Origin: Neoechinorhynchus agilis
Lineage: Eukaryota; Animalia; Acanthocephala
Assembly: GCA_051530055.1 (NCBI GenBank)
Contig: CM121343.1
Location: 3,070,389-3,134,388 of the forward strand
DNA: 64,000 bases
Reading direction: 5' to 3'
Shown in pieces: positions 13,248 through 42,800 of the stretch. A program made the position numbers and the translations under genes. The notes beneath the pieces are model-generated. The model searched no databases. It saw only the letters and a program-made list of their open reading frames with translations, and was not told the origin of the DNA. How positions within the stretch are numbered: the first letter of the stretch is position 1; the number at the start of each line of letters is the position of its first letter.

Positions 13248-13757
13248 TTTTTGCAAGTATTCTATTTCGATGTTGGCAACATCGTCACTGATTCGGTTTT
13301 AGTTCAGACTGCTACAATCACCTTTGTTCTTTGCAATGCGGAGCGTTCAAAAGCTCTGAAACGTGCAATATGTACTCGTTTTTCTAATTTAGCAGTTCAT
13401 GTGTTGTTGGAATCCGAGGAGTATAAATCAATCATCTTCGTCCTTAACTAGCACAATAAAATATTTCCTTTTACTAATAAATATCTTTGAAATGACAGAT
13501 TGATTGCATTTTAGCCGTACAAAAAACTGCTTTTATAAGTATATTTATTCGAGGCGATGTAAAATTCTAACATTAATTTTGATAATCAACATTTGTAGTT
13601 TTCTGTTAACTCAAAAACGACCTATATATTCACAGTTGAACGATTTACATTAGGTTTTAATAAATTACAATTATGGCTATGTGATGATGTCTAATTTAGA
13701 CTATATAGGAGATCAAACATTGTTTTATTAGCTTATGTTGGTATCCTAAATGTCCGT

Positions 13758-15089
13758 TCAGATGTATGATGGAGAAAATATTCTACAACATAGACAAGTC
13801 AGGCGGAAGTTATCCAGTTTCCTTTTTGTTGATGATGGCAAAATGTTTGGGATGCCTTCACCTTTGGTAACTGCAAAAGATTAATCTGCATTCAAGATGG
13901 GCATTAAGAACTACTTTAAATTTTTACCTGGCCTCAAATTTGAGTCCTCCAAGCAAGCTTGATTGAGTTTGGTATTAAAAGTAGTTTTGATATCCATAAG
14001 GCATCTTATGTCACTGTTGTTTCAAAGATGTTTCAGTGTATTAGTTTGAAGTTGATTAAAAATTAACTTACCGATCTACTAGAGTTCCATCGAATCTAGT
14101 TACAGTTTCCGCCGTTTGGACCTTGGCATTAGTGGTACATGCATGTCTTATAACAAGTGTACCGAGTACAGTGCTCTGATTCTCATCATCTTAAAGCAAA
14201 TAAAGCTCAAAAATAATGAACCTTTAAGTATCAAAGTGAACTTACTGTTATTCACATGAGGAAAGGTCTTGTGTAAATATCGCATTTTTCTCAGTTCCGA
14301 AATTATTAATTCGAGACAAGTTAAAAAACAGTGTGATGTTGACATACTACGATTGCCCTTGTTTGCAATGTCTCTACAGATTAATAAAAGATCATTGAGT
14401 GTATACGGATCTTTTCATAGACCTTACCCGCTTATACAAAAAGACAATTCACTCTCGACTTTGGATGCACAGTCCCTTATACTTGTCCTTAATCTCATTA
14501 TTTCCTCCCGTATGACAGAACTATCTGAATGAGATGATCCAACAAACGTTATAAAATCCCGTAAGAGTGAGAATTGTGAGTTAAGAGCTTTGACGTTCTA
14601 AAAATCCAAATAAATGCTCAAGAAAAAACAAATAAACAATTACCACTATCTTTTTCGGATTTTTTGAAAAGTCATCGCCCGTGACCAGACGGCCAGTGCG
14701 TCCAGCTCCATCGCACTTGGTTCTCATCGCAGTGAAGCTGTCTTTTTAATCTGAAATATCACTCACTTCAAACAAGACTTTATTTTCTAGATTGACAGAA
14801 TGAACTTTGATCAGTAAATTAAATATTTTTCCGCTAATACGATGAGCATTTTGCAATTTTCGACAAAATCGAACGCTGAAATAATTGCAAAATACTCATT
14901 GCGTCCTTGGGTTGGCGGACTGTGGAGGCATGCAGCACAGTAAAGTACGTCTATGTTTTTAGAGAAGCCGAGTTTCAATTCCCTACTCTGCACATTTTTG
15001 AAAGACTCAAATTTTTGCTGAAATCGATCGAAGAATAACTTGATACGCATGCACCCCCGTCGGTGACGTGGAGAGAGAACTGCAGCCAT
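13758..15089 (-). CDS. Unknown multi-exon protein
   Basis: Kozak-like gcaccATGg at 15089. Several gtaag/gtgagt...ttttag/cag introns bound open exons such as RDIANKGNRSMSTSHCFLTCLE, DDENQSTVLGTLVIRHAC and DIRCLMDIKTTF. No homology recognised. Confidence 0.5.
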
Positions 15090-16489
15090 GGTGCCACATT
15101 TTCACACCGTATACTAACAGTTAAGTATCCTTTGACTTAAAAAGAAAGTCTGTCGCTGTTGTTATCAAAATCGAAATGAAACAGGATTCCAATGATGGTC
15201 CAGACAACTAAAAAAGTCACACTCACGTGTCTTTGCCAATAAAATTCGGTCTATACAAACGCTACTAGATATCTCAAAAATACATAAATCGACAAAAAAT
15301 GGACCCTTTTGCTGTTAAATTCTAAATATTAGACAACTTAGTAACATCGGAAGCCATTGACAATTTCAATTGAAACATTAGCGATTAGTAATAAAGATAA
15401 AAAACTTCTGTAACTAGCAGGCAGCCTCAGAAACATCATTAATAACGCAAAACTATGCTCCACAACATTTCGGGAAGCTATAAATCATGCTTTAATTTTT
15501 AGTCTTAAAGGCAGCATTAATAATTTTATGCAATTAAAACGTTCTTTTCGGTTTCTTTACATGTAAACCGCAATGATTGATTTCTTTAACATATTTAAAT
15601 ATAGTTCAAGTAGCTTAGTCCAGGAAATTCTTATGAATACAGTTATTCGCGATGTGTTCAAAGTCGAAAGTGCGGAATAATAATGGTAAAATGAAGAGAT
15701 AAAAGTAACTAAATAAAAGTGGAAAGGGTAATTATTAATGATTAGGAACAAATGGACAAAAAACAAGGAAGGGGCAGAAATTGTGTATTGAAGAACTTAT
15801 AAAGAAGTGAATTTTGATTTTCAAGAGATGAAAACACTTTGAGGTTCACGTCCGACTCAACGCATATCGTTGGTCAGTTTAGTCAAAGAAAACGAGGTAT
15901 CTTAAAACTGTGCTTAAAACGCGGATCACAGCAAATCCTCAAGCACTAAGGCTGGTGGAATAAAATACAGAATAAGAAAAAATTAAAGAGCTAAATGGTA
16001 TTTCGTCACTCATAGGGGACATATTTTATTCTTTTCTTTGTCAGAGATAAAATCAACAATCAAAGATTACATTAATCAATCTCTGTCACCTTTCACAGAG
16101 TTATTTTTAGCATCATGATTCAATTTGTTTAGACAAGATAAATGCAGTAAAGTAATATACGGCATCTATACGATTCATGGACACTCAAAGTTGGCAATCA
16201 CTTTACATCACCATTCTATGGTCTAAAATCAAAGTTATAATTTTTTATGGACAAATATAACCGAACGATTTCGATTCGCGTTGATTATGGTTGGATTTTT
16301 TATGATCGCCAATTTACCAGTTATTTAACTGTGGACTTTCGTCCGAGTAAATGTCAAAAGATTAGGACTTTTAAAAGATCAAAAACTTTGTGCGAAAATG
16401 GTAAAATGCACTCCGTTAACTTTGGCTAACGTTCATACTTCATTGATTATATTTGTTTGAGGAAACGAAGTCAGATACCTCTTTCGCAA

Positions 16490-19400
16490 TTACGACTCAA
16501 AAACTTCGAGCTCAATTACACTTTGAAGAGCAATATTATCCGTGAATTCCTTTAACCAATTGATCATTTTATCTTTCTCTTTACATTGCCGAATCAATGT
16601 GCTAACGGCTTGACTTAAAACAGCTTTAACGATGACGGAGGATGAAGAACTATTTTCAGTTAGTAATAGTGGAAAGCTTGACCGAATTTCAGGATCTGCG
16701 CATGAGATCGACAACAACACGGCTAAATGATTGTCGCTCAGCTTTAATTGAGTTGGTTGGATAAACTCGAGACAACCAAAAAGCCATTGACCGCCATCAC
16801 GACAGGTGTGTGATAATTCGACGAGTAGAAAAGCGGATCGAACTGAGTTTATTCCTTGCTTTAGAAGCTCATTGATATATTTTCCAATTCGTTCCGGAAT
16901 CGTCAGTTTCTGACTTATGAGACGAAACTCAAGCATTATTTGCGCCATTTCACAGTGATGCGCTTGCTTAAATTCATTCAATAGCATTGCTATCGATTCA
17001 ATGCATCCATCCCGAGAATCATCACATAGGAGATGAGGCTTTAGAAGATATTTGTTTTCAAAGACGATTGGTGATAGCATGCTGTGACTTAGATCAGAAC
17101 TCCTGAATCACAAAAGGTTGGTTCAATTTCAGTTTACTTTGTGCATATCTCGAGTCATTTCTTAATTTGTATAAATAGAAAAAACTTCCTCAAATTGTGA
17201 CTTAAAGGTGTGGATGAAATACACAAAATTTAAGCATTAGATCTATAAAATTGGCAAACATTGGCCTATTTCGATAAAAGTTTCCATTTGTGTAGCTTAA
17301 AGAAAAGCCAAAGTAGTTAAAGATATATTACATGGTCAACCAGTTATGCCATTCTATATCCCTACCATAAGGTTCAAGGACATCTGATGTGGATCAACTT
17401 CATCTACGACAAGATCTGCAACATCGACCCGATAATGTACTTTACAAATTTCTTGGAGAAAAAGAATCCTTTTTTCATCAACATCCATTAAAAGTTCAAT
17501 CAGAGTTTGCAAGCAAGAACGTAAATCGTAGTCCGATTCAACTGTGGAAGTTTTTGAAAGTGAACTTAGAAATACGTCTCCAGGTCTTGGCCAAAGAGAA
17601 GCATAACTGATAGCGGTAACCATTGATCGAATAATTAGAACTTTATTGTCCGATCGTACAAAATGCATTTCATCACTGTAAAGTCTTAGTAATTCACACC
17701 AAAGAAGTTCAAATTGATGTCGATCAATCCATCCAAACCGTTGTATGCGTTCAATGGTTGGAAGAGCGGCATTGGGAGTTAAAACTGGTAGATGGCGAAT
17801 AAGCTCACATAGAGGTTGCGAAATCGATTCGAACGAGTGCACATTATCGATCTTCAGCTTAATGATTTTTCGCAAAATGTCAACACAATCATTAGGCAAT
17901 TCAAATTTACGCAATGAAAGACGTTCTATGAGGCAATGTCTCATCCCCGCAAAGTAAAGAATATGGGAAATACGAGTGAAAGGTCTTAACTGGGAAAAAG
18001 AGATTATAAAAATTGTAAATGTCAATATCTCCTCGATTTCAGTTAGCGATTTTACGGTTCGCTGCATTTTTGTAGAAAACTTATTCGAATGTGAAAATAG
18101 ATCTTAAAAGTGTGTAACTATAGAATTTTTAGATTGTTTTGAATTACGAGGGCTGAGAGGTCACCAATTATCGGTCGCATATCTTCTATCAATTTACCAA
18201 TTAACACGAGCAGCGATTTCGAGTGAGCATTAAACCTATTGTCAAAAATTGCGAACTTATCGTCACCATCAAATTCATTTTTCACATTGTCCACCATCAT
18301 GAGAGTATTATTCATCGGTGGTGTACATCTTCGTGATCTGGATGACAATGAAGTTTGAATAAAACAAAAAGGCTGGATCCACAATTCCGAAGGATGCTCA
18401 TTGATCAAATAAGTAGCCAATTTTGACAACCAGGAAGCTGAAAGATTGGCCATTTCACCTGATGATGTTACATTCTCCATTATTTTGCTTTCTTTTTTAT
18501 CGATTTGAGCAATGTCGTGGAACGTTGCATCAGATACCGATAGCACTGGGATAAGCTTTGAGAATAAATTCAAATCATCTTTGAAGTAATGCTTATAAAG
18601 AAGTACTGCAGAAGTTAATAATATATCTGTTAGGTCGCTGTGGTTCGTAGTTTGACGATTATCAACAATGAGCTGCAACATCATTCTTAATTTGTCTTGG
18701 TGAGTATCGCGATCACGAACATTGAACATCAAAACGCATAGAACAATAAGACCATGGTTGATTCCAATTTCATTGATCTATTTCAGTTTTAATTTTTGTT
18801 TAAAAATTCACTTACTTTATCGCGCAACTGGTCTAGCGTTGATATTAATGCTTGTTGAATATCCACGAGATCCGAAATGGCTCTTAGAGCACCTGCAGCG
18901 CTGACAAAGAGCTTCAACGACGGCTTATATAGCTAAATTTTCTTAAAATAACGTTGGAATTTGTAAAGTGAATACATACACAAGAAGTCAAACAACGGTT
19001 AATGGCAACAATTGATCGCTTTAATGTTTCCGGTGTAAATAAATAACTTACATTGTCCAATAAGAGATTCATGGTATAAAGAGCCTTCAATTAAATGGTA
19101 TAAAAGTAGTAAGCAAAAGAAACTCACATGAGCAGTGGATATTTGATCACACAAACAATCAATATGAGTAGCTCTCGATAAGAATAGAGAGCCAGGATTT
19201 ATAGTTCGATTAAAAGGAGTACTCTATCGGTAAGCTGCGGTAATTTTTCTACCAAAAATCCCATACTAATGATTACTTTTTATCACATAACAACAAAAAT
19301 GTCAAAGAACCTCGTGAATATCATAACAGAGATTTCGACTAAACCCAAAATGAGAACGCAATATCGAATCCAAATTTCAAATCAACGCTGACAATTTTGA

Positions 19401-22400
19401 TTTTTTTAATTTACAACTAGTGAGTGACTGTGATTTGCGGCAAGGGTGCAGTTGAAATATAAAAAATTGATTGATTAATATTGCCGCCTAAAAGTAGGGC
19501 AGTAGAACAGTCGTGGTCGACCAATAGCATATTAGTGAAAACTCCGATTTAAGAAGGCCGAAAATTAATTCGTCGAGAGTAACTCATTTACTAGGACCGG
19601 AAAGCATACGTTTGCTTCCTGGCATGGCCATTTGATAACAGCTTTTGCAACGAAGGACAAGACATCCTCATCTTCGTTTCGTTCATCAATACCATGTTGT
19701 TTGATTAATTGACAATATTTACGAAGAACCCTTTCTGCTTGCATCCAAGGAAGATAAAAGCTATTGAACCTTTTTGATTCCAAATTAGCTTGCACAAAGA
19801 TGAATTTCAGGGCATCGATAACCATTCGCTCTCTTGGATCCACGCTGGACAACCGCTCTAACAAGGTTGTTTGAAAGCCCTTTAAATTAAAATAGAATAA
19901 TATAAATCGAATGAAGCGTCTGTGATTTTCCCAGCACCAAATCCGGACATCCCGTAGATCCTACAAGTGGTATTTATTGCATTCTGTCTAATTATAGGTG
20001 GCATTTCAAGTCTAGGGGAAATCTCTTTATTAACAAACGATCTTGCTTGCAGGGAAAGAGTAATAGAACTCCTGTCAAACGGTAACGTACGGTGTGTTCA
20101 GAAGCTTTAAGTGTACATTTAAGGTGACTACGCCCGAAACAATAACTGAATTCTGATGATTCTTAATTTTTCACTTACGCTTTTCCGCTCGAGTTTCTCA
20201 GAATTTATTCCGAAAGCGATCATGTCGGTTACGAGATGCATCACAGCTTGACCAAACCGCCTATTAGAAGACCGAGTCGCAAAATTTGCCAAAATCCTGT
20301 TCATGATTGATTCAAAATGTGAAAGTTTACTTCGGATATAATTTCGAGATGTTCCTGTTGGTTGATATTTAAGAACAAGTGGGAACGGATCCAATATTTT
20401 TGTTCTAATGCAATGAATAAAAATTAAGTGAACATTTTTGATAAACGAAACAAACTTTAAATGTTCCGTGATATCAGTAATTGTGTTGTTGAACGTTTGT
20501 GAAGATCGCAAAATATTGGAGGCTTCAATTGAATCTGAGCCGTGTGTAAACAACTGGCACAAACACTAAATGATCAAAACACAGCAATAATAGAAATATT
20601 AAAACTTTTAGATTTATACGTTGCGAACGAAGTTTGTGACTGATATAGGGCAAAATGGAAATAGGAGAAATAAAAATGTGAGTATATCGTTTAACTGCTC
20701 TTCATAGTGCGGCCATGGTATCAACCGCATGCTCGACGCGAGACAAGCGATTACACTTGAAATGAATTTTTCAAAGTGATTCTGTTCACTGTAGGCTTCA
20801 AGTGACTCCAATGATGTTTGACACATTGCATATATTGAACGAATAGATCCGCATAGGCGCTCATATGATTCGAGTTTAGTATTTTTGTCCACTGATATTT
20901 TTGAAGCGATAGATTCAACCCAAAACAATGAATCTGTCCAATCTTCAACTGGATCGGATAAACTATGCTTCGCAGTTACTAGCGTTTTCAATATTCTAAA
21001 CACGAGACTGGCAATCATGAAAGTTGTTAACAGTTCACACACACCTCAGGCAATGTTCGAAAATATAGAACGCATTTTTTTCCATATTATCATTGGGCTG
21101 TAGTTGCGAAGATACTTTACCGATGAGATCCAAGAGACGAATTTGAACATCAACATTGAAGAAAACATCAGCCATGTGAATGAATGAAGGGTAAATTGTC
21201 ATAATCTCAATTAAAATCGACTTTGTCCAAGCGGATTTGTATTCATGAGGAGGATATAAATCAGTGAGAGTATTAAGAATAGATATTGACGAAATTGCCT
21301 TTCTTAAATAAGTAAAAATGTGTATAGTCAAACATTTAAAGACTCACGTGATGAACTTTGTCGACTTCAAATGAATCAAACTCAAAAGTCCACTGAATAG
21401 TACGATTAATCATCTGCTTTAGGCATCTACATTTACTCCAATCACAAAAATTATGGTATTTGGCGCATGAAAGTTCGGACAAACAAGTGTTGCAAGCATC
21501 TTCGAATTTAAATCCTCGATAGGCTTGTTTACTAATCGATCTAACAGTTTGTAACAGTAAAAAGGAAAGAAATCAATCAATTTGGCATATACTTGCTAAT
21601 AGATAAAACTGCCATATCATGAATCCTTTGGTCGTCACAGCATGCCATGTTTAGCAGTCTAAGGATAATATTGTTTTGAAGAAAGATGAAATATCCATTC
21701 GAATTTCTTAAAAGCAACGCCAACATTCGAAAATCCAAATCGGACCAAAAATCAATCAATGCGCACTAATAGTCTTCAATAAGTGATGCAAAACAATTGT
21801 TATTGTGTTACTTTAACTGTCCAGTGATTTGGGTGCATGGATAAAGATGTTTTTACGATCTCAATAAAGGCTTCAAAGCTGCCTTTCGTAAGGAGAAAAC
21901 CTGTAAGACTTTTAAGAGTTTGAATTGAGTAACGAGCAATAGCCGGATTAGTATTGTGTAAACATTCTTCCACAAAATTAAGTTCCTCACGCAAATGATT
22001 TGTATCGTTCATGATGATTGTTCGTGACAGGTCAATTCTACCCAATATATCATCTCCAGTTTGATATTCAGCGAAATCGCGTGACTTTGTGCCTTCAATG
22101 ATTTGTCTTTTAATAACCTTCTAGCAAGGACTCGGCCAACCTTTTGCAAACATGCCAATGAGTGGTAAAGCAAGGCGACGATAAACATCGTTTCTAACAA
22201 TATTAGAAAGGATACCCGCAGTACTTGTATTATCAAATTGAACGCCAAAATTGTATAATCTCCCTATTAACTCCAAAATGGTGCAAATCGATGATTTTGA
22301 CTGATCTAGAATATTCTCCAGGACCTTCCAACAGGTAGCGCTAACCTATGATAATATCAGAAAATTTATAGTAGTAAAAGAACTTTTATAATGATGCCCA

Positions 22401-25049
22401 ACGATTTTAGTTCCCTCCTTTTCTAGCAGTTGCTACCATGAATGAAGAATTTGTTTTTATGAAATTGCTTTTAGGATTTAGAAGTTTATTTTTTGCAATG
22501 TTATCGCCAAAAATTATTTTATTCTACGCCGAAATCAGGATTGAACTTCCCAGTCCATGTATCCACTAAGGTAAATTATTCAAGCAGGTTCTTTGATGTC
22601 TTAGAGAGATGTCTAATGAAAAATATATACGTAATTCAACTGTAAAATCCCAGTTTGAGTCAAAGGGTTCAAATCCGGTGCCGCTGATGACGCAGAACTA
22701 AAGGGGCAAATACCTCGTTGAAGATATGAGGACTCCTTTGGAGGTATCTGACGATCCGGCGTGTAGAGTACAAAAAGTGTGATTTTATGTGCTTCCCTGA
22801 ACCAAATCCGTGGGCTGTGTGCCAAAGCAATAAAATTATCAGCCGTGAAAAGAAGGCCACAGTTAAAACACAGAATAAAAGTTACCGAGTGGCCAGATTT
22901 CAAAAAATGTAAATTATGGCCACATTTCATATTTTTGAAGATTAAATTGTTCATATAGGTTGTTTTCTGGCGTAGAAATTAAAATGATTTTATTTTTAAA
23001 ATCCAATATTTCGACACAATCCTGTGCTTTTATCATGGTTGTGTCAAAATATTTAATTTTAAAAATAAAATCATTTTAATTTCTACGCCAAAAAAAGAAC
23101 CTACATTTTACATTCAGTGAAAAACTATAGGCGACCGGGAAGAGTAATGTTATAAAAACTAGTGCTTATAATTGTTCTAGGACTAAATAATTTTATTATA
23201 TTGACTTTGATTCATAACAATAATCGATCTGAGCATTTTTATCGATAACCGTTATAAATGACAATTTTAAGGTTTCATCTGCACTTTTGCAAAACTAAAA
23301 AATGGATTTAATTCTAATGCAACAATTTTAGGAAATCCCAAAGCAAACGAGCGTTGATGAAAAGGAGGCGTATAAACGTTTAGCATGACATTCTAAAAGT
23401 CCATATATTTTTCTAAATTGGTGATAGTGCAATGAAACACTTGTGATTATGTATTTTACTTCAACCATATTTTATGCATTGTAATGTGATTTAAGAAGAA
23501 AGGATTGAAAATTTGTAGTTGTTCAGAATTCCTTAATTTTAATTTGCATGAAATGCTCAACGATGCAGGATACGATTTGTGTTGTACAAATTCTTAGAAA
23601 TTTGATAGGAGAATTATTCCAGTCAAAAAATTGGAACAACTATTTTGTCTGTTTTAAGCTTACTTTTGCCACCTAAACTGGGTAATTGTCAAAAACAAAA
23701 TGCTCTAAGATAAAAAAAATTAAAGAATTGTAAAGTTATTAGAAGCATCAGCATGTGGATTCAAGTTTTGATTTAAAAAACCCCAAATCAAGTTGACTCC
23801 TTACAGTAAATTGTTGTGAGGATAACCGAGGTTCGAGTATTCGTATGAAAACGAGCAATATGAGGATCTATCCGGAAATAGAACAACCAAAAGATAACTG
23901 AGATACCTCGTTAAGATGTTTTATGTTAAATCGTTCATTGTGATAAAGATCAATATTTTCCCTTTGAACAATATCGAAAATGTATATGATTATCTTCCAG
24001 TGAGCGAATTTTAACTGCTCTTTCATTTTCAGCAACCCTACGAATTAGCGTATTTCAAAAATAAGAAAAAGCTTAGACAAACCCCATGTATAGGCGATGC
24101 AATCAATCATTGATCGTGAATTTGTTATACATACAATAACGATCTCTGCACAATTTCTGCTTCTCGTTTCATCGTCAAACCGCACTGCCTTATCGACGAG
24201 GCAATCAATCATTGACTAAATTTTTGTAACCTATAAACTTTGCAATGAAATAATTTAGCCACTTACTTCACTTGTCGATTTCTCGATATAATTAGAAAGA
24301 GGCGATAATATCTTGTGCAAATTATCATCAGCTAAGCATTGTAGAATATTTTCGGATTCAGTGGCGGAACAGATAGTCAGCACACAATCGCACATAGCAG
24401 CAGCAGACATACTGGCACTAGAATCGATATTGTTATTATTGGAAAGTTAAGAACATTCTTAATCCTTACGCCCATTCGTATGGATTATCGATAAGACAAG
24501 CAAGTCTGGAAAACGCAACACAAAGAGTGCGATCATTCACCATTGGATACTTTATCAAGCATCCAAATAGCTCTTGTCTCATTGATTGTGTTGAGAAATC
24601 TTTAAAAGTCTAATTCCTGACTGTTAAATTTTTTTGCAAACAAAATGCACCACTTACAATAAGAATTTTATTGATACTTTCACGGGCCTTTATCCGGATA
24701 ACTACTAAGCTGTGACCGCATAAATCAAGAATGCATGAGAATGCTCGAGTAAACAATCGAGATCCAGGTCCAAATAATCCACATGAGTCGCAATGAGATA
24801 TATGTTTTCTAATTAACTTGAATTTGAACTCAGAACACAAAAAAAAGAATTAAACGAACCTTCCTCTAGTCAAAATATTTGTAACTTCCGATATCAATGT
24901 TTGCAATGATGTAAAACTGCTCAAATCACGAAAAAAGAGTTGTAAAACAAAAAGTACTTTTTAGATTCACAGGAATCATTCCGAAAAGAGATTTCTTGCT
25001 CTATTTTATCTAATACAGTCATCAATTGGGTTGCAGTGGCGGAATACAT
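16490..25049 (-). CDS. HTT: Huntingtin orthologue, many short introns, no polyQ
   Basis: N-terminus MYSATATQLMTVLDKIEQEI (cf. MATLEKLMKAF). Conserved HEAT blocks: LFTRAFSCILDLCGHSLVVIRIKARESINKIL, MRQELFGCLIKYPMVNDRTLCVAFSRLACL, HPNHWTVKV, CCDDQRIHDMAV, IERIQRFGWIDRHQFELLWCELL (human [23 protein letters not shown]). The last exon resembles the huntingtin C-terminus. Confidence 0.88.
22956..23103. mobile_element. MITE with ~60-bp TIRs in a huntingtin intron
   Basis: taggttgttttctggcgtagaaattaaaatgattttatttttaaaat...cgacacaatc is inverted as ...aaaataaaatcattttaatttctacgccaaaaaaagaaccta. Confidence 0.8.
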
Positions 25050-25608
25050 CTATAAAAAGAATTTCATTGTTCGCATTTTAAATAGTGTCCAGGATTTAAA
25101 AATTAATGCCCAACAATCAGTACCCACTGTCAGAAATTCGGACCCTGTGTGCTATTTTGGAAATTTTAACAATTAGTCGAATATCTGTAACTTAAAGTTA
25201 AAAATCACTTCGTCCGAAAAATATGCGATCCCGATCTTAAAATAAATATCGCCGTAGAGATTATTCGTTAATATTAGCCTCAGAGCTACTTTTCCAGCTT
25301 TAAAAACATGAAAATTATCCCTTAACATTCTCAAGTGTAGAAAAACATCTAAAAGATCTTAAATTACAATCCCGGTGGCCGAAAACCACCATCGTCAGTA
25401 TCATTGTTACTTGAACGTTCACTTACGCTGCTTAAAGTAAATACGAATTCTACCGTGTAGTTGCGTACATGGTCTCAAGCCGGAAGCAATCCTTTAAACT
25501 TCAACTGGATCGCGAGGAAATCTCACCTCATCAGTCACCTAAAGGTTTCCGTTATTTTGTATTCTATAAATTGGGTACGCGGCCATTCCCCGAGGTTCAG
25601 GGATCTTG

Positions 25609-28600
25609 TAAAGATGTTCACCATTTTAACTTTTTTATAGCGAATTATCAAATGATTGATTCATTTTTGATAGTTCTCGGCCTTCGCGTAGGCCTTTTTC
25701 AGACTATCTAAAATGGAAGCACTCGATTTCGTTTATCCGGTGGTATCCGCAGATTGAGCGTTCATCATTTTAACTTTTTATAGCGAATTCTAATAATTGA
25801 TTGATTTGATAATCTTCGGCCTTCTTCAGTCTATCTAAAATGGAAGCACTCGATTTCGTTTATCCGGTGGTATCTGCCCATTGAGCGTTCATCATTTTAA
25901 CTTTTTTATAGCGAATTCTAATAATTGATTGATTTGATAATCTTCGGCCTTCTTCAGTCTATCTAAAATGGAAGCACTCGATTTCGTTTATCCGGTGGTA
26001 TCCGCACATTGAGCGTTCATCATTTTAACTTTTTTATAGCGAATTCTAATAATTGATTGATTTGATAATTTTAGGCCTTCGCGTAGGCCTTCTTCAGTCT
26101 ATCTAAAATGGAAGCACTCAATTTCGTTTATCCGGTGGTATCCGCCGATTGAGCGTTCATCATTTTAACTTTTTTATAGCGAATTCTAATAATTGATTGA
26201 TTTGATAATCTTCGGCCTTCTTCAGTCTATCTAAAATGGAAGCACTCGATTTCGTTTATCCGGTGGTATCCGCAGATTGAGCGTTCATCATTTTAACTTT
26301 TTTATAGCGAATTCTAATAATTGATTGATTTGATAATCTTCGGCCTTCTTCAGTCTATCTAAAATGGAAGCACTCGATTTCGTTTATCCGGTGGTATCCG
26401 CAGATTGAGCGTTCATCATTTTAACTTTTTTATAGCGAATTCTAATAATTGATTTATTTGATAATTTTAGCCTTCGGGCCTTCGTGGCCTTTTCAGTCTA
26501 TCTAAAATGGAAGCACTCGATTTCGTTTATCCGGTGGTATCCGCCCATTGAGCGTTCATCATTTTAACTTTTTATAGCGAATTCTAATAATTGATTGATT
26601 TGATAATCTTCGGCCTTCTTCAGTCTATCTAAAATGGAAGCACTCGATTTCGTTTATCCGGTGGTATCCGCACATTGAGCGTTCATCATTTTAACTTTTT
26701 TATAGCGAATTCTAATAATTGATTTATTTGATAATTTTAGGGCCTTCGCGTAGGCCTTTTTCAGTCTATCTAAAATGGAAGCACTCAATTTCGTTTATCC
26801 GGTGGTATCTGCCCATTGAGCGTTCATCATTTTAACTTTTATAGCGAATTCTAATAATTGATTGATTTGATAATCTTCGGCCTTCTTCAGTCTATCTAAA
26901 ATGGAAGCACTCGATTTCGTTTATCCGGTGGTATCCGCACATTGAGCGTTCATCATTTTAACTTTTATAGCGAATTCTAATAATTGATTGATTTGATAAT
27001 CTTCGGCCTTTTTCAGTCTATCTAAAATGGAAGCACTCGATTTCGTTTATCCGGTGGTATCCGCAGATTGAGCGTTCATCATTTTAACTTTTTATAGCGA
27101 ATTCTAATAATTGATTGATTTGATAATCTTCGGCCTTCTTCAGTCTATCTAAAATGGAAGCACTCGATTTCGTTTATCCGGTGGTATCCGCACATTGAGC
27201 GTTCATCATTTTAACTTTTTTTATAGCGAATTCTAATAATTGATTGATTTGATAATTTTAGGCCTTCGAGTAGGCCTTGTTCAGTCTATCTAAAATGGAA
27301 GCACTCAATTTCGTTTATCCGGTGGTATCCGCAGATTGAGCGTTCATCATTTTAACTTTTTTATAGCGAATTCTAATAATTGATTTGATAATCTTCGGCT
27401 TTCTTCAGTCTATCTAAAATGGAAGCACTCGATTTCGTTTATCCGGTGGTATCCGCAGATTGAGCGTTCATCATTTTAACCTTTTTTATAGCGAATTCTA
27501 ATAATTGATTGATTTGATAATTTTAGGCCTTCGGTAGGCCTTCTTCAGTCTATCTAAAATGGAAGCACTCAATTTCGTTTATCCGGTGGTATCCGCAGAT
27601 TGAGCGTTCATCATTTTAACTTTTTTATAGCGAATTCTAATAATTGATTTGATAATCTTCGGCCTTCTTCAGTCTATCTAAAATGGAAGCACTCGATTTC
27701 GTTTATCCGGTGGTATCCGCAGGTTGAGCGTTCATCATTTTAACCTTTTTTATAGCGAATTCTAATAATTGATTGATTTGATAATCTTCGGCCTTCTTCA
27801 GTCTATCTAAAATGGAAGCACTGATTTCGTTTATCCGGTGGTATCCGCAGGTTGAGCGTTCATCATTTTAACTTTTTTATAGCGAATTCTAATAATTGAT
27901 TGATTTGATAATCTTCGGCCTTCTTCAGTCTATCTAAAATGGAAGCACTCGATTTCGTTTATCCGGTGGTATCCGCAGGTTGAGCGTTCATCATTTTAAC
28001 TTTTTTATAGCGAATTCTAATAATTGATTTATTTGATAATTTTCGGCCTTCGCGTAGGCCTTTTTCAGTCTATCTAAAATGGAAGCACTCGATTTCGTTT
28101 ATCCGGTGGTATCTGCCCATTGAGCGTTCATCATTTTAACTTTTTATAGCGAATTCTAATAATTGATTTGATAATTTTAGGCCCTCGCGTAGGCCTTCTT
28201 CAGTCTATCTAAAATGGAAGCACTCAATTTCGTTTATCCGGTGGTATCCGCCGATTGAGCGTTCATCATTTTAACTTTTTTATAGCGAATTCTAATAATT
28301 GATTGATTTGATAATCTTCGGCCTTCTTCAGTCTATCTAAAATGGAAGCACTCGATTTCGTTTATCCGGTGGTATCCGCACATTGAGCGTTCATCATTTT
28401 AACTTTTTTATAGCGAATTCTAATAATTGATTGATTTGATAATCTTCGGCCTTCTTCAGTCTATCTAAAATGGAAGCACTCGATTTCGTTTATCCGGTGG
28501 TATCCGCAGATTGAGCGTTCATCATTTTAACTTTTTTATAGCGAATTCTAATAATTGATTGATTTGATAATCTTCGGCCTTCTTCAGTCTATCTAAAATG

Positions 28601-29697
28601 GAAGCACTCGATTTCGTTTATCCGGTGGTATCCGCACATTGAGCGTTCATCATTTTAACTTTTTTATAGCGAATTCTAATAATTGATTGATTTGATAATT
28701 TTAGGCCTTCGGTAGGCCTTCTTCAGTCTATCTAAAATGGAAGCACTCAATTTCGTTTATCCGGTGGTATCCGCAGATTGAGCGTTCATCATTTTAACTT
28801 TTTTATAGCGAATTCTAATAATTGATTTGATAATCTTCGGCCTTCTTCAGTCTATCTAAAATGGAAGCACTCGATTTCGTTTATCCGGTGGTATCCGCCC
28901 ATTGAGCGTTCATCATTTTAACTTTTTTATAGCGAATTCTAATAATTGATTGATTTGATAATCTTTTCTTCAGTCTATCTAAAATGGAAGCACTCGATTT
29001 CGTTTATCCGGTGGTATCCGCACATTGAGCGTTCATCATTTTAACTTTTTTATAGCGAATTCTAATAATTGATTGATTTGATAATTTTAGGCCTTCGGTA
29101 GGCCTTCTTCAGTCTATCTAAAATGGAAGCACTCAATTTCGTTTATCCGGTGGTATCCGCAGATTGAGCGTTCATCATTTTAACTTTTTTATAGCGAATT
29201 CTAATAATTGATATGATAATCTTCGGCCTTCTTCAGTCTATCTAAAATGGAAGCACTCGATTTCGTTTATCCGGTGGTATCCGCAGATTGAGCGTTCATC
29301 ATTTTAACTTTTTTTATAGCGAATTCTAATAATTGATTGATTTGATAATTTTAGGCCTTCGCGTAGGCCTTCTTCAGTCTATCTAAAATGGAAGCACTCA
29401 ATTTCGTTTATCCGGTGGTATCCGCAGGTTGAGCGTTCATCATTTTAACTTTTTTATAGCGAATTCTAATAATTGATTTGATAATCTTCGGCCTTCTTCA
29501 GTCTATCTAAAATGGAAGCACTCAATTTCGTTTATCCGGTGGTATCCGCAGATTGAGCGTTCATCATTTTAACTTTTTTATAGCGAATTCTCATAATTGA
29601 TTGATTTGATAATTTTAGGCCTTCGCATGGGCCTTCTTCAGTTTATCTAAAATGGAAGCACTCAATTTCGTTTATCCGGTAGTATCCGCAGATTGAG
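25609..29697. repeat. Tandem satellite array, ~31 units of 128 bp (short) or ~140 bp (long)
   Basis: Period measured at 26161, 26289 and 26417 is 128 bp. The long variant carries tttaggccttcgcgtaggcc in place of cttcggcc. Confidence 0.98.
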
Positions 29698-29698
29698 T

Positions 29699-29755
29699 GA
29701 AGGCCGAAAATTATGAAATAAATAAATCATTTATTATAATTCGCTATAAAAAGTT
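29699..29755 (-). repeat. Inverted partial satellite unit closing the array
   Basis: gaaggccgaaaattatgaaataaataaatcatttattataattcgctataaaaagtt approximates the reverse complement of aactttttatagcgaatt...ataattttcggccttc. Confidence 0.85.
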
Positions 29756-30683
29756 CAGGGATTGTATATCCGCCCGCGTACCTCTTAGATGACTGACAAA
29801 GCCTCGCGAAGTATCTCAAAATATTCTCCTCCAACCCTATCATCCGGAAGGATTTTCTATTGATGATTAAAATTTACTGCTCATTTCTCTTTCGGGTGGC
29901 ACACAAAAGCCTTATTATTGTTTACATCTGAATCCTGTGATACAAATCTTCTTAAGCTTTTATAAACAACTTTTTGTAACGATTTGATCTTTGCCAATCA
30001 GTACCCAAAGCAGGTTGGAAACTTCTTTTACTGGGCATTGGAAACTTAAAAGCGAAAAAGGGAACTTTATCTTTTTTAAGATTCAAGGATGCGCCGGGAT
30101 CATTTTACATATATATATAAAGGGAAAATATTCTTAAAGGGTTATGTTTTATAATATGCGAGAACTTGTGATAGAATTCGGCAGCACTACAATCGTTAGG
30201 GAATAATAAAACATTTTACTATTGAACAAAGAAGATGAACCATTTACCCTGTTTCCTCGTAAACACACTATCGAACCAAATGATAGGTTCCTTGGATGTG
30301 GTTGCTTTATTTTGGAGTGGATTATAGGTCCAGTCGGGCGTGAAAGTTGGTGGATATTGGAGTAGGAGAGTTTGAGCACAGCAACACGCTGATGTTTCAG
30401 TATAAAAGATGCGCGAGTATTGGAATCAGTCTAAAAGGTTCCGATTAAAAAATGATCCTCATAATTTGACAACCGCTTTTATTCGCGTTCAAATCGTTAA
30501 AGAAATAAATTTTCAACCGTCATTCAAAACAAAGACCCGTGTGTGTTTGTTTTTGTTAATCGTCAATTTACGAACCACTTACAATCCGTCTCGCTTTTCT
30601 CTGCACACATGAATACGGTCGTAAGCGTATTTGAAGGGAATTATTTAATCCTTGTACTTTATTGCACTACCGCCAGAAACGGA

Positions 30684-33600
30684 TCATGCCCGCCTTCCAT
30701 ACCTCATCATGTTTCTACCGAATCTACAATCGGCCAGTTCATCGATGATGGCGCAAATGCTTGAAGCACGTTCCCTTAGTCTATTCAAATCGACTTCAAG
30801 GTGATGGTAATGCCGTTCCATTTCTGGCTGTGCGATCAACATTCTGAACAAATCGAATTCATCCTTCAGATCCTTACTTCTTATTGGTTCCTTCTGTCTC
30901 CAACAAAGATTTTCTACATACTCAAAATCGAATCTTCGTGTCCGCATCACCGTACACAAACAAGGTAACAAATCGACCCTAGCAGTCTGAAACACCCGGA
31001 GCGCATCTTCTTCTGTCTTAGTCCTGCTCAATGCTCCTTCTAGCTGGTTCTTTAACATCGTCAATATCGATAAAAAGAGATTTTCGACAACATCACTCTC
31101 CAATCCAGCGCTGGTGCTATTTGATTCACTCACAAGTCTCGAATTTACCTGCCTGACGGTGCACAGGAAGTGTAGGGCGTCTGAATATCGATGATTTCTA
31201 ATACTTTCTCCAGCATGGACCAATCCAGCGACGACACTGAGAAAACGCTTGTACTTTAGAAGTGCGCTCTGATATTTACGGTACATGATTGGTGTTTGCA
31301 TTATTCGTCTAAAGGCTACTTCGGCCTTAAGTTGCAAAAACGAAAATCCGGGTTTAGCTCTTTGGAATGATATAGATGTCTTTAGGACATCTAAGATCGC
31401 GATTCGTTTCATTTCGCTCGGCATGTCGTTCATGTCAAAGTACAGTAACATATTCCATATACGATCGTCACAACCGTATGGATGATTAGTAAAAGCATCC
31501 ACATGCTCATTGATTTCACAAAGCGCAGATTCTAAAAATTCATCGAGACAAGTGTCCATATCGTCCACAGTAATGACCGAACAATCTACAAGCGGTTTTA
31601 TAATCGCCATCAGGTTAGACATCATATACGGGAGACCGGTGATATTCTGCAAAATTTCCAATTCTCTAATCATTGGATCGTTTTTAAGCAATTCACATTC
31701 GGCAAGCATTTCAAGTACTCCTTCAGTGAACGGATTTTTGGCGTTGTCATCATCGCTCAAACTAATACATTCTATCGCTTTCGATAGTTTTGTGGCAATT
31801 TCGTCATCGTCTATTGCATTCTCACGAACGTAAATCAGCAAATAGGCACAGGGAATCAATTCGGAAAGTCCGTTGTCCACTCCTATCCCGTAATTTCCAA
31901 GTATCAAAGGTTTATCCTAATTTAGCTAAACACCACGAAAAAATATATAACTTTTATCTACCAAAAAACTGCATGATTATCTGGAAATTGCGGTTTCGCT
32001 GTTCTTACGAACTTCACTGTACTCGACGGGGGTAACTAAATTTAAGATTTGCTTGGAAAACATTTGAAAATCACACATACTTTCAGCATCGTTACATTTG
32101 TACCAAACGTTTGATTTCTGATCGAGCACATAAGTCCAATAATGGCCGCGAGTGGATACGCCACGATGAACGCAAATTGCTTGAAGTTTGTATGGATGCT
32201 AAGTTGGGCTTTAATTGGATCAGATTCTTTTACGCAATAAAAACCTTTCGTAATTGAGATGTATCGTATAACAACTGCTTCTTGGCGATTGCTTGGCGTA
32301 CTTCAAGAGCAACTTCTAAATTATTGGTAATTTTAGTCACAATAAACAACTTTAATAACAACAACAACAACAAACCGTCGTGTCGAGTTTGAAACCATTT
32401 AATCATTTCACGTATGTAATTGCGCGCTAAGTGTATCCGTTCCACGAATTCATTATCTCTGAAAGATCAGAATTAGAACGAATCACAGGCGGGGTGGGGG
32501 AAATCGTGATGATAAAAACCTTGTTTCAGCCGCTTCTACAATTTTGCGAGCTTCATCAATAGTACTGTTAACGTGTACCAGAGCTCTGACGGAGCTCAAC
32601 TTTGATTGTCCAACTTGAAGTTGATTAAAAGTGTCAAATTTTTTTGTCAGTGCATTAAGTTGCTTTACGAATTGTAGTTCTTTTACTCGTCTCCATTTAC
32701 AACGATCCCTGTTATCCACTAGGTATCGGTCAATGAACAATGTCTCCGGGAACACGAGTTGATCACAGATCTTTACAATCTGCTTGGTCTCGCTGGAAAA
32801 TCGATAACGACTCAAGCAAATGAACACTATATCCGGGATGTCACAGATCCATCGCTCAAAATGAGCATTATCGCAGCTATCGAGCTCATTAGGAAACTCA
32901 AACCATAGACGAAACAAAGCATCGTACAGTTCATTGCTGTTGCAAATGGGTACATTAACTTCGCGGAAGACCTCAACCCCATTAAGAACACCTTTAATGT
33001 GAGTACAAAGTCATGTTGAGAATATTCTATAGGCAAACTTACCATCTCGTATGGATTGGAATTTACCGTATATACATTTCATAAATACTTCTTTAAGATT
33101 CGCCAAGCGTTTTACTACATTAGCGTCTTTCAAATGCTTGATTAAACAATCAATAGCATCTTCGATTCGATCCACTAAGTGATTGATAGCTTCACTGGCA
33201 TCTTCCTGTGAGAAATCAGATCTCTCGAAAGTGCTCATACTTCTAAACTCATCCAGCGCTTCAATGGGACGTGCCAAATCCTGACTTGGATCTTGCATTG
33301 TCATAAAAAGCTTTCGTAATTTGATTAAGAATTTCACACTAGCTCGTTCCCTATCATTTAAGTGAAGATCGGCAATTTGTTTTAGTGGAAGTGAGAGCTC
33401 CAAAAAGAACTTCCGTACGTGAGGTATAGAAAAGAGCGATTGTATAATTGAATTGAACCAACACGTATTGCCAAGATTTTTCATGCCCATCGGCTGTTTT
33501 CTACGAAACATTGCCGGATTCAGCTCAAATGCAAGCCGGATTTCCTCGATTTGATGAATTATTGATCTGATCATATAAAAAACCTTAGAGATGATCATGA

Positions 33601-37379: not shown

Positions 37380-39600
37380 AATACATTATTGACTTTTGTT
37401 TTTTATTAGAAAAACCAAGATGAACGTTTTCAATTGAGCGCTCGAGAAAATGCGACTTTTGTAAAGAATACAAACATTATTGACTTTTTGTGGATTCTTG
37501 TTTTTTATTAGAAAAACCAAGCCAAGATGAACGTTATCCACTGCGAAACCAAGAAAAAAAAGCAACCTTCCTAAAGAATAAACACATTATTGACTGTTTA
37601 TGGACTTTTGTTTTTTATTAGAAAAACCAAGTCAAGATGAACGTTTTCAATTGAGAGCTCGAGAAAATGCGACTTTTGTAAAGAATACAAACATTATTGA
37701 CTTTTTGTGGATTCTTGTTTTTTTTATTAGAAAAACCAAGTCAAGATGAATGTTTTCAATTGAGCGCTCGAGAAAATGCGACTTTTGTAAAGAATAAACA
37801 CATTATTGACTGTTTATGGACTTTTGTTTTTTTATTAGAAAAACCAAGTCAAGATGAATGTTTTCAATTGAGAGCTCGAGAAAATGCGACTTTTGTAAAG
37901 AATACAAATATTGAACACTATTTATCGACTCTTGTTTTTTACTAGAAGAACAATCTCAAGATGAACGTTTTCCACTGCGAAACCAAGAAAAAAAGCGACC
38001 TTCCTAAAGAATAAACACATTATTGACTTTTTATGGATTCTTGTTTTTTTACTAGAAAAACTAAGTCAAGATGAATGTTTTCAATTGAGAAACCAAGAAA
38101 AAAACGACCTTCTTAAAGATTAAAAACATCATTGACTTTTGTTTTTTCTTAGGAAAACTAAGTCAAGATGAACGTTTTCAATTGAGAGCTCGAGAAAATG
38201 CGACTTTTGTAAAGAATACAAATATTGAAGACTATTTATCGATTCTTGTTTTTTCATTAGAAAAACCAAGTCAAGATGAACGTTTTCAATTGAGAACTAG
38301 AGAAAATGCGACCTTTGTAAAGAATACAAACATTGTAGACTATTTATCGATTCTTGTTTTTTACTAGAAGAACAATGTCGAGATGAACGTTTTCAATTGA
38401 GCGCTCGAGAAAATGCGACTTTTGTAAAGAATGCAAACATTGTAGACTATTTATCGATTCTTGTTTTTTACTAGAAGAACAATCTCAAGATGAACGTTTT
38501 CAACTGCGAAACCAAGAACAAAAGCGACCTTCTTAAAGAATAAATACATTATTGACTTTTTGTGGATTCTTGTTTTTTTCATTAGAAAAACCAAGTCAAG
38601 ATGAATGTTTTCAATTGAGCGCTCGAGAAAATGCGACTTTTGTAAAGAATAAACACATTATTGACTGTTTATGGACTTTTGTTTTTTTATTAGAAAAACC
38701 AAGTCAAGATGAATGTTTTCAATTGAGCGCTCGAGAAAATGCGACTTTTGTAAAGAATACAAACATTATTGACTTTTTGTGGATTCTTGTTTTTTTTATT
38801 AGAAAAACCAAGTCAAGATGAATGTTTTCAATTGAGCGCTCGAGAAAATGCGACTTTTGTAAAGAATAAACACATTATTGACTGTTTATGGACTTTTGTT
38901 TTTTTACTAGAAAAACTAAGTCAAGATGAATGTTTTCAATTGAGCGCTCGAGAAAATGCGACTTTTGTAAAGAATAAATATTGACTGTTTATGGACTTTT
39001 GTTTTTTTACTAGAAAAACAAAGTCAAGATGAACGTTTTCAATTGAGAGCTCGAGAAAATGCGACTTTTGTAAAGAATACAAATATTGAACACTATTTAT
39101 CGACTCTTGTTTTTTACTAGAAAAACAATGTCAAGATGAACGTTTTCAATTGAGAAATCGAGAAAAAGCGACCTTTGTAAAGAATAAACACATTATTGAC
39201 TTTTTATGGATTCTTGTTTTTTATTAGAAAAACTAAGTCAAGATGAATGTTTTCCACTGAGAAACCAAGAAAAAGCGACTTCTTAAAGAATAAACACATT
39301 ATTGACTTTTTATGGATTTTTGTTTTTTCTTAGGAAAACTAAGTCAAGATGAATGTTTTCTACTGAGAAACCAAGAAAAAAGCTACCTTCTTAGAGATTA
39401 CAAACATTATTGACTTTTGTTTTTTCTTAGAAAAACTAAGTCAAGATGAATGTTTTCGTCCGAGAACCAACAAAAAAGCGACCTTCTTAAAGAATAAATA
39501 CATTATTGACTGTCTATGGATTTTTTTTCTTAGAAAAACTAAGTCAAGATGAATGTTTTCTACCGAGAAACCAAGAAAATGCGATCTCCCTAAAGAATAA
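37380..39600. repeat. Diverged tandem array of ~105-109-bp monomers
   Basis: The anchor gtcaagatga recurs at 37631, 37740 and 37848. Unit ...agaaaaaccaagtcaagatgaatgttttcaattgagcgctcgagaaaatgcgacttttgtaaagaatacaaacattattgac... Confidence 0.95.
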
Positions 39601-39605
39601 AAACA

Positions 39606-39754
39606 TTCGAATGGAGAAAGTAATTAAATTTAATTAAATTAAATATTTCGATCCTCTATCTCGGTGCAAGTTTTTTCAACAATACTGAAGAAGATCCGAG
39701 ATAGAGGATCGAAATATTTAATTTAATTAAATTTAATTACTTTCTCCACTCGAA
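39606..39754. mobile_element. MITE with 59-bp near-perfect TIRs inserted in the satellite
   Basis: ttcgaatggagaaagtaattaaatttaattaaattaaatatttcgatcctctatctcgg and its inverse differ by 1 mismatch, with a 31-bp spacer. Confidence 0.9.
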
Positions 39755-39759
39755 CAAAA

Positions 39760-42700
39760 CAATGATGAACTATCTTTTCAAAATAAAAACATTATTGACT
39801 TTTTTGTTTTTTCTTAGAAAAACAAAGTCAAGATGAATGTTTTCAACTGAGAAACCCAGAAAATGCGACCTTTAAGAATATAAACATTGAAGACTATTTA
39901 TCGCTTTTGTTTCTTAGAAAAACTAAGTCAAGATGAATGTTTTCGTCCTAGAACCAAGAAAATTAACGACCTCCTTAAAAAATAAAAACATTGAAGAATT
40001 TTGTGGATTCTTGTTTTTATAAAAAGCTAAGTCAGGATGAATCTTTTCTCTGAGAACAACGACAAAAGAGACCTTTGTAAAGGTTAGAAACATTGTTGAC
40101 ATTTTATGCTCTTGTTTTTTAGAACTATGTCGGGATAAATGTTTTCCACTGAGAACCGAAAAAAAGAGACCTTTTTAAAGAATACAAACATTGTAGACAT
40201 TTTATTTATTTGCGTTTGTTTTAGACTAAGACAGATTGAATGTTTTTCAACTGAGATCTCAAGAAAAAACGACCTTAAAGAATACAAACTTTGGAGACTT
40301 TTTATGGACTCTTTTTTTATTAGAACAAACAAGTCAGGATAAATGTTTTCCACTGAGAACCAAAGAAAAAGAGACCTTTTTAAAGTACACAAACATTGTA
40401 GACATTTTATTTATTTGCGTTTGTTTTATACTAATACAGATTGAATGTTTTTAATTGAGATCTCAAGAAAAAGAGACCTTCATAAAGAATACAAACAACG
40501 AAGACTTTTTATGGATTCTTGTTTTTTTATTAGAAAAACTAAGTCAGGTTAAATGTTTTCCTCTGAGAACCAAAGAAAAAGAGACTTTTGTAAAGAATAC
40601 AAACATTGTAGACATTTTATTTATTTGCGTTTGTTTTATACTAAGACAGATTGAATGTTTTTAACTGAGATCTCAAGAAAAAGAGACCTTCATAAAGAAT
40701 ACAAACAACGAAGACTTTTTATGGATTCTTGTTTTTTTTGTTAGAACAAAAGTCAGGATAAATGTTTTCCGCTGAGAACCAAAGAAAAAGAGACCTTTGT
40801 AAAGAATACAAACATTGTAGACATTTTATTTATTTGCGTTTGTTTTATACTAAGACAGATTGAATGTTTTTAACTGAGATCTCAAGAAAAAAGAGACCTT
40901 CATAAAGAATACAAACAACGAAGACTTTTTATGGATTCTTGTTTTTTTATTAGAAAAACTAAGTCAGGATAAATGTTTTCCTCTGAGAACCAAAGAAAAA
41001 GAGACTTTTGTAAAGAATACAAACATTGTAGACATTTTATTTATTTGCGTTTGTTTTATACTAAGACAGATTGAATGTTTTTAACTGAGATCTCAAGAAA
41101 AAAGATACCATAAAGAATACAAACAACGAAGACTTTTTATGGATTCTTGTTTTTTTATTAGAAAAACTAAGTCAGGATAAATGTTTTCCTCTGAGAACCA
41201 AAGAAAAAGAGACCTTTGTAAAGAATACAAACATTGTAGACATTTTATTTATTTGCGTTTGTTTTATACTAAGACAGATTGAATGTTTTTAACTGAGATC
41301 TCAAGAAAAAAGATACCATAAAGAATACAAACAACGAAGACTTTTTATGGATTCTTGTTTTTTTTTTGAAAAACTAAGTCAGGATAAATGTTTTCCTGAG
41401 AACCAAAGAAAAGAGACCTTTGTAAAGAATACAAACATTGTAGACATTTTATTTATTTGCGTTTGTTTTATACTAAGACAGATTGAATGTTTTTAACTGA
41501 GATCTCAAGAAAAAGGACCTTAAAGAATACAAACAACGAAGACTTTTTATGGATTCTTGTTTTTTTATTAGAAAAACTAAGTCAGGATAAATGTTTTCCT
41601 CTGAGAACCAAAGAAAAAGAGACCTTTGTAAAGAATACAAACATTGTAGACATTTTATTTATTTGCGTTTGTTTTATACTAAGACAGATTGAATGTTTTT
41701 AACTGAGATCTCAAGAAAAAAGAGACCTTATAAAGAATACAAACAACGAAGACTTTTTATGGATTCTTGTTTTTTTATTGGAAAAACTAAGTCAGATAAA
41801 TGTTTTCCTCTGAGAACCAAAGAAAAAGAGACCTTTGTAAAGAATACAAACATTGTAGACATTTTATTTATTTGCGTTTGTTTTATACTAAGACAGATTG
41901 AATGTTTTTAACTGAGATCTCAAGAAAAAAGAGACCATAAAGAATACAAACAACGAAGACTTTTTATGGATTCTTGTTTTTTTATTGGAAAAACTAAGTC
42001 AGGATAAATGTTTTCCTCTGAGAACCAAAGAAAAAGAGACCTTTGTAAAGAATACAAACATTGTAGACATTTTATTTATTTGCGTTTGTTTTATACTAAG
42101 ACAGATTGAATGTTTTTAACTGAGATCTCAAGAAAAAGAGACCATAAAGAATACAAACAACGAAGACTTTTATGGATTCTTGTTTTTATTAGAAAAACTA
42201 AGTCAGGATAAATGTTTTCCTCTGAGAACCAAAGAAAAAGAGACCTTTGTAAAGAATACAAACATTGTAGACATTTTATTTATTTGCGTTTGTTTTATAC
42301 TAAGACAGATTGAATGTTTAACTGAGATCTCAAGAAAAAAGAGACCTTCATAAAGAATACAAACAACGAAGACTTTTTATGGATTCTTGTTTTTTTATTG
42401 GAAAAACTAAGTCAGGATAAATGTTTTCCTCTGAGAACCAAAGAAAAAGAGACCTTTGTAAAGAATACAAACATTGTAGACATTTTATTTATTTGCGTTT
42501 GTTTTATACTAAGACAGATTGAATGTTTTTCAACTGAGATCTCAAGAAAAAGCGACCTTAAAGAATACAAACTTTGGAGACTTTTTATGGATTTTTGTTG
42601 TTTTATTAGAACAAACAAGTCAGGATAAATGTTTTCGTCTGAGAACCAAAGGGAAAGAGACCTTTGTAAAGAATATAAACATTGTAGACATTTTGTAGAT

Positions 42701-42800
42701 TCTTGTTTTTAGAAGAGCTGAGTAGGATAAATGTTTTCCACTGAAAACTGTAGAAAAAGTGACCTTTAAAAAGAATACAAACATTATTGACATTTATAAA
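39760..42800. repeat. Same satellite family, mostly a homogeneous ~210-bp dimer higher-order repeat (~12 copies)
   Basis: aacattgtag recurs at 40602, 40811 and 41022 (209-211 bp). Monomers gtcaggataaatgttttcctctgagaacc and gacagattgaatgtttttaactgagatctc alternate. Confidence 0.95.

Follow-up and report, generated by a model that had tools for sequence, protein, structure and literature searches.

Transitions from transposon to satellite are known in flies, frogs, bivalves and beetles, and few of them keep both decayed arms around a long array. Here we describe an array of a 128-bp monomer lying between two inverted arms in the acanthocephalan Neoechinorhynchus agilis, within a 64-kb stretch of contig CM121343.1 (positions 3,070,389 to 3,134,388), which we call the window and whose own numbering we use throughout. 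Among the closest described systems is the foldback element Tetris of Drosophila virilis with its TIR-220 satellite (Dias et al. 2014, PMC4079207), whose terminal inverted repeats (TIRs) have their ends in common with the MITE (miniature inverted-repeat transposable element) DAIBAM (PMC4079207). In Xenopus, Xstir and miDNA4 are MITEs with a satellite monomer or array inside them (Hikosaka & Kawahara 2004; Scalvenzi & Pollet 2014; summarised in PMC12628747); their MITE, tandem array and composite forms are documented, and the terminal repeats decay later (PMC12628747). The pearl/DTC84 modular elements of bivalves and Helentron-borne satellite-like arrays (PMC5139131, PMC7492417) are also relevant. 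The genome paper of N. agilis, based on a hybrid of Oxford Nanopore (ONT), HiFi and Illumina reads from pooled worms with Hi-C scaffolding, is silent on satellites and transposons.

The array (25616-29699, 4.08 kb) contains 31 units tagged by a conserved 22-mer, which lies on the plus strand in 31/31 units, all head to tail. Tandem Repeats Finder (TRF) delimited it to 25691-29697, with a period of 128, 30.5 copies and 90% matches. Unit length ranges from 124 to 143 bp and two forms can be distinguished, a short form (S, 124-128 bp) and a long form (L, 135-143 bp), of which the latter holds the near-palindrome GGCCTTCGCGTAGGCC. The order of the two forms along the array, SSLSSLSLSSSLSLSSSLLSSSLSSLSLSL, shows a partial arrangement as S+L dimers. 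Mean identity between units is 96.8%, rising to 98.8% between S units, and many units are identical. As expected of a satellite, the repeat forms a kilobase-size head-to-tail array of high homogeneity, and the monomer is present at more than one locus within the window. The forward array runs from position 7 of the unit profile (25616) to about position 7 (29699) and spans an integer number of units, within a few bases. At its right end an inverted 57-bp partial unit (29699-29755), equal to 0.45 of one unit, abuts the last forward unit head to head. The inverted-repeat search gave partial-unit arms of 33-40 nt with 88-94% complementarity, the unit profile found the inverted piece from 29755 to 29691 (profile positions 19-83, E=6e-8), and BLAST aligned 25632-25685 with 29752-29699 (82% over 56 bp, E=4e-9). 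An array of about 31 units that ends in such an inverted piece had been proposed in an earlier reading of the sequence alone (the original prediction), and the 22-mer, the inverted-repeat search and the unit profile all agree with it.

The two arms extend over approximately 25433-25685 (~253 bp) and 29699-29882 (~184 bp), and each is built of three collinear mirrored parts: a copy of a repeat that we call X, a linker, and 57-65 bp in common with the monomer. In this inner piece the arm consists of monomer sequence, so that monomer and arm overlap. The outer part is a dispersed repeat of ~130-160 bp that is also found without satellite at 7321-7474 (+) and 52107-52234 (-); the arm ends are therefore dispersed sequence that resembles a transposable element (TE). 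An X profile matched 25562-25433 (-) in the left arm and 29757-29882 (+) in the right arm (nhmmer). With leave-one-out profiles, the left flank (25554-25517 (-), E=1.3e-3) and the right flank (29778-29872 (+), E=1.1e-3) were each the best non-training match in a search space of 140 kb. In addition, right-arm X aligned with 52219-52115 by BLAST (66% over 106 bp, E=9e-6), and the 16-mer TTTAGGTGACTGATGA is common to left-arm X and the X copy at 7340. X contains an internal palindrome around TCGCGA/TTCGAA, seen as a full 29-nt hairpin in the 52-kb copy. The 7.3-kb copy may carry 12-nt TIRs (ATCATAACTAAA at 7325-7336 and ATTAGTTATAAT at 7462-7473, 10/12 complementary), and X may itself be a small MITE.

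A satellite enclosed by inverted flanks, as claimed in the original prediction, is thus what we find, the flanks being part of a dispersed TE-like repeat; its borders of 25510 and 29809 were too narrow, as the homology with other X copies reaches ~25433 and ~29882. The mirrored blocks are present where they had been reported: at 29774 and 29802 lie the reverse complements of GGTACGCGG (25574) and TCGCGAGG (25510), and at 29781 there is an imperfect one of TCAGTCACCTAAAGG (25531). An inverted collinear chain of at least two exact 8-mers between the flanks arose in 10/20,000 shuffles. The TCGCGAGG block is without information on orientation because TCGCGA is palindromic, and it matches in direct orientation too. 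A global alignment of the whole arms misaligned the blocks and was not used. Compared with the left arm, the right arm is short of ~28 nt in X and ~40 nt in the linker, and no significant homology was detected past ~200 bp, either between the left and right flanks or between the flanks of this array and those of the second one described below. Between X and the unit-derived part, both arms hold an exact direct 10-mer, GTTCAGGGAT, at 25595 and 29753 (29753-29762), a direct repeat of 10 bp being expected by chance in ~0.5% of shuffles. This repeat had been predicted correctly, apart from a start at 25594, and was set beside the target-site duplications (TSDs) of 9-11 bp known from Foldback/Mutator-type elements; since it is internal to the arms, it cannot be the TSD of the element as first drawn.

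The window holds a second array of the same 128-bp monomer at 12494-13270, with 5 units and 95.4% identity to the main array. It starts at profile position 7, as the main array does, and the junction 12-mer TAAAGATGTTCA has only two occurrences in the window, one where each array begins on the left. The left flank of the second array is X-like, with GAGGAAATCTCA at 12430 and further blocks in common with the main left flank, and the likeness of the two left flanks was reached in 0/500 shuffles with loose scoring and in 17/1000 with strict scoring. The two arrays thus have a left junction in common. Where the original prediction looked to other arrays for shared flanks and a shared terminal inversion, the second array, the only other one in reach, gives a mixed answer: its left junction is related, but its right flank is unrelated and lacks the inversion.

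In what we take to be the best reading, one about as probable as not, the locus is an old non-coding composite, MITE-like or foldback-like, whose inner unit was amplified in place, and this composite is probably no longer mobile. At first the arms would have enclosed about one 128-bp unit. Such a one-unit progenitor would have measured ~510 bp, a typical MITE size, and would have moved by transposition. The single unit could then have expanded in place to 31 head-to-tail copies via unequal exchange or replication slippage, and the array may still be undergoing homogenisation, partly as S+L dimers. In situ amplification of the segment that separates the left linker from the inverted piece is expected to leave an integer-unit span; capture of a fragment from an array already in existence is not. 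Between the two arms the X parts are ~56% identical counting gaps, as compared to 96.8-98.8% for the units, which makes the arms old, and the array either young or under continual homogenisation. In the original prediction a TIR subrepeat had run away into a satellite; the overlap of monomer and arm and the integer-unit span are in line with this, whereas the arms contain no subrepeats. The enclosed array fits the known route from small transposon-like elements to satellite DNA, and the element may once have transposed. The locus is best described as a TE-associated, gene-proximal satellite array, which is a known class with no member described in Acanthocephala.

The arms have the long terminal inverted repeats of Foldback-type elements, though highly diverged, and as in a MITE a short non-coding element lies between inverted repeats. 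Tandem subrepeats, from which the original prediction had the TIRs built, were found in neither X arm by TRF or by the repeat search, and the 31/31 units run one way, unlike in Foldback or Tetris. At the outer arm borders we saw neither the TSD that is typical of a transposase superfamily, as expected for a MITE, nor one of 8-11 bp, as expected for Foldback. The locus is therefore not classed as Foldback/Mutator, since two testable defining features of this class fail, repeats in both arms and a flanking TSD. The asymmetric ends of Helitrons and Helentrons, which lack TIRs, do not apply either: a single repeat forms both flanks, in inverted orientation, although no search was aimed specifically at Helitron end motifs.

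Tetris is similar in build. Both it and the N. agilis locus are non-coding with long inverted arms, the outermost arm of Tetris is common to the short dispersed element DAIBAM as the arms here are to the solo X copies, and in both the tandem repeat has a short stretch in common with the arm. Likewise, kilobase-size arrays grew inside the element in both cases, probably disabling it. In Tetris, however, both arms contain tandem repeats, and there are a middle domain, TSDs of 8-10 bp and several complete copies, whereas here 31 units run one way, 0.45 unit is inverted, there is no middle domain or TSD, and one two-armed copy was seen. The two have no sequence relationship and belong to different phyla. 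With Xstir and miDNA4 the locus has in common that one family is found as a solo piece, as a tandem array and as inverted-repeat ends plus array. Copy number in these MITEs goes from one monomer to long arrays, and decay of the terminal repeats is expected in long arrays. The two Xenopus families have been delimited across the genome and show clear TIRs and TSDs (TA in miDNA4, a Tc1/mariner MITE), whereas in N. agilis the termini and TSD are not definable and the arms are ~56% identical. Like the pearl/DTC84/Helentron arrays, the N. agilis array belongs to the short to medium satellite-like arrays in gene-rich euchromatin; both have a fixed monomer start beside conserved flank modules, and a palindrome near the junction (here GGCCTTCGCGTAGGCC, in the long form). 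Those elements have unlike left and right modules, and ends of the Helitron type are without inverted repeats, in contrast to the inverted flanks described here. If short and long copies between the same arms exist, this family would grade from an element with one unit up to an array of 4 kb within gene-rich euchromatin.

Several results weigh against an origin as a transposed composite. Copies and transposase were looked for in ~70 kb, that is the 64-kb window and 6 kb to its left. In this DNA the 31-unit locus is the sole two-armed copy, and no short intact two-armed copy was found, which the original prediction had proposed to look for. The repeat-number variants in reach are the 31 units with both arms, the 5 units with the left junction only and an armless piece of 0.6 unit. 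Neither the window nor the 6 kb left of it yielded a transposase, as an autonomous partner would encode, or any other TE protein. A systematic terminus-plus-TSD scan at the outer borders of the arms gave 0 candidates, though the age of the arms leaves such a scan little power. Under strict pairwise alignment the outer flanks, diverged as the arms are, gave a weak to marginal result (34/1000 shuffles, p=0.034). Furthermore, the second array ends mid-unit, with no right arm, X or inverted piece at its right end, and as it lies only 13 kb off, a local duplication could explain the common junction without transposition. Finally, the inverted piece is no nearer to the left-edge unit than to the other unit variants: its identity is 81% to the adjacent forward unit, counting gaps, and 81-86% to any unit variant. 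An 'edge-type' kinship, with derived features common to the left-edge unit and the inverted piece, was dropped because of this equal distance.

These observations can also be accommodated by a purely local history, which we regard as possible but rather unlikely. Without any composite transposition, a euchromatic array would have grown beside a resident X, and fold-back or template-switch repair would later have placed an inverted copy of its left border, made up of X, linker and the beginning of the first unit, at the right end; the second array would be a local segmental duplication of the left border and a few units. One two-armed copy and the absence of a TSD are in line with this, as is the position of the second array, 13 kb off on the same strand and without a right arm. 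An unrelated 288-bp repeat (55974-56776) is capped in a similar way, which hints at a general local capping process. However, the arms are far more diverged than the array, and the inversion must then predate the homogenisation of the array. The missing ~28 nt of X and ~40 nt of linker in the right arm would mean that the copying was not simple or that decay was heavy, and a solo unit fragment in an intron 24 kb off needs dispersal anyway.

An improbable alternative is a nested origin, in which a satellite block that already existed, or its carrier element, was inserted into the loop of an equally older X(-)/X(+) palindrome and GTTCAGGGAT represents a target duplication or microhomology. Exact copies of GTTCAGGGAT do lie on both sides of the unit-derived sequence, inside the X arms, shuffles give a direct 10-mer by chance in ~0.5% of cases, and integration of tandem repeats flanked by microhomology into MITEs is on record, for example in miDNA4 (review PMC12628747). 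The second array, in contrast, has CCATTCC outside and TAAAGATGTTCA inside the insertion point and lacks GTTCAGGGAT; since it matches both sides without this repeat, the X-to-unit junction predates the split of the two arrays. Moreover, the unit-derived inverted repeat is terminal at the right only, with ~25 extra bases between GTTCAGGGAT and the mirrored piece at the left, and no satellite-free X(-)/X(+) palindrome was seen, both solo X copies being single. That hybrid long-read assembly produced the terminal inversion as an artefact, for example through a chimeric fold-back read, is very improbable: satellites are error-prone in assembly and the genome is a MaSuRCA/Flye hybrid of ONT, sparse HiFi and Illumina reads from pooled worms, but the inverted piece is 81% identical to its neighbour unit, where a fold-back artefact would be near-identical, and the inverted orientation runs on into unique linker and X, distinct from the left arm.

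Table 1. Parts of the inverted-arm satellite locus and related copies in the window.
Feature	Position	Strand	Basis
Forward satellite array, 31 units (S/L)	25616-29699	+	TRF, 22-mer, unit profile, unit alignment
Left arm, outer part: X copy	25433-25562	-	nhmmer, leave-one-out E=1.3e-3, 16-mer TTTAGGTGACTGATGA
Left linker: GGTACGCGG 25574, GTTCAGGGAT 25595, junction TAAAGATGTTCA 25609	25563-25615	+	sequence, word match
Left arm, inner part: stretch of first unit mirrored at right end	25628-25685	+	BLAST E=4e-9
Right arm, inner part: inverted partial unit	29699-29755	-	inverted-repeat search and unit profile, E=6e-8
Right linker: remainder of second GTTCAGGGAT, start of CCGCGTACC at 29774	29756-29777	+	sequence, word match
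Right arm, outer part: X copy minus ~28 nt at array-proximal end	29778-29882	+	nhmmer, leave-one-out E=1.1e-3, BLAST
Second, truncated copy: X-like left flank, junction TAAAGATGTTCA, 5 units	12430-13270	+	TRF, unit profile, word match
Solo X, no satellite	7321-7474	+	profile and BLAST comparison
Solo X with own 29-nt hairpin (52162-52190 / 52219-52247)	52107-52234	-	profile, BLAST, hairpin search
Solo degenerate partial unit, intron of K2P-channel gene	53835-53904	-	nhmmer E=7e-5; BLAST 78% over 74 bp, E=2.6e-10

At 53.8 kb, the solo fragment comprises 0.6 unit, and it was rejected as a progenitor-like one-unit copy because it contains a forward piece only and is armless. Conserved 21-22-mers from the unit gave no match in two scans of metagenomes, and neither did a word-indexed protein search with concatenated stop-free translations of the array, aimed at spurious gene models over other arrays. 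No open reading frame (ORF) of more than 80 aa overlaps the element, and none of more than 44 aa starts inside the array. A structured RNA or a tRNA-derived short interspersed element was considered as the source of the unit or X and dropped, as neither sequence had an Rfam match or contained a tRNA.

The array has a USP-like gene on one side, with its 3' end at 30684, and on the other a gene model with Htt_N-HEAT_1, whose 5' end is at ~25022. A distance of 560 bp upstream of huntingtin had been predicted, which is roughly right: we obtained 411-594 bp, depending on the boundary used, from the start of the gene model at ~25022. The ORFs at 16.5-21 kb are without Pfam or PDB match, and Htt_N-HEAT_1 was found only in the 5' gene model, so the block as a whole is only putatively huntingtin. 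The two 128-bp arrays (12494-13270 and 25616-29699) bracket the gene block 13758-25022 (minus strand) in direct orientation. Arrays in direct orientation around a 12-kb block that includes huntingtin are a possible substrate for deletion, duplication and misassembly, and this region should be annotated with care.

The 288-bp tandem repeat at 55974-56776 consists of two full units and one partial unit (94%), and each unit holds a 44-nt internal inverted repeat. Its right end is an inverted copy of its own left-edge unit (56021-56092 and 56120-56140 vs. 56684-56776; 65 bp at 89%, E=2e-17), the same build as that of the 128-bp array. Because two unrelated arrays in one window (25.4-29.9 kb and 55974-56776) are built alike, it is conceivable, although doubtful, that N. 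agilis recurrently builds arrays from hairpin-type elements, with one end capped by the inverted opposite edge as the signature. If the capping pattern is genome-wide, several stages in the rise of satellites out of foldback-like DNA would be on view in a phylum that is unexplored.

Another satellite family occupies ~5.4 kb at 37386-42795, as two diverged sub-arrays with dimeric higher-order periods of 217 and 208 bp: a 108/217-bp satellite (37386-39607) and a 102/208-bp satellite (39803-42795). A link of the 108-bp satellite to X was suggested by GAGGTAATCTCA at 37263, on its upstream edge, and was dropped, as such a match arose in 74-141/1000 shuffles and inverted flanks are absent. The two sub-arrays are separated by a near-perfect hairpin with ~60-nt arms (39606-39755). 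It is flanked by AAAACA (39600-05 and 39756-61) and is possibly an inserted MITE that duplicated a short target.

Just outside the left end of the window, ~100-670 bp from its start (L002 15238-15807), lies a chromo-domain gene (189 aa), together with a 733-aa ORF without Pfam match; neither resembles a transposase. Among the genes of the window, the esterase-family gene has its nearest relative in Pomphorhynchus laevis, at only 50% identity. The C-terminal region of the USP/UCH-type gene beside the array (30684-31907, minus strand) had no detectable homologue outside this genome among 5.8 billion proteins, which fits very fast protein evolution in this lineage.

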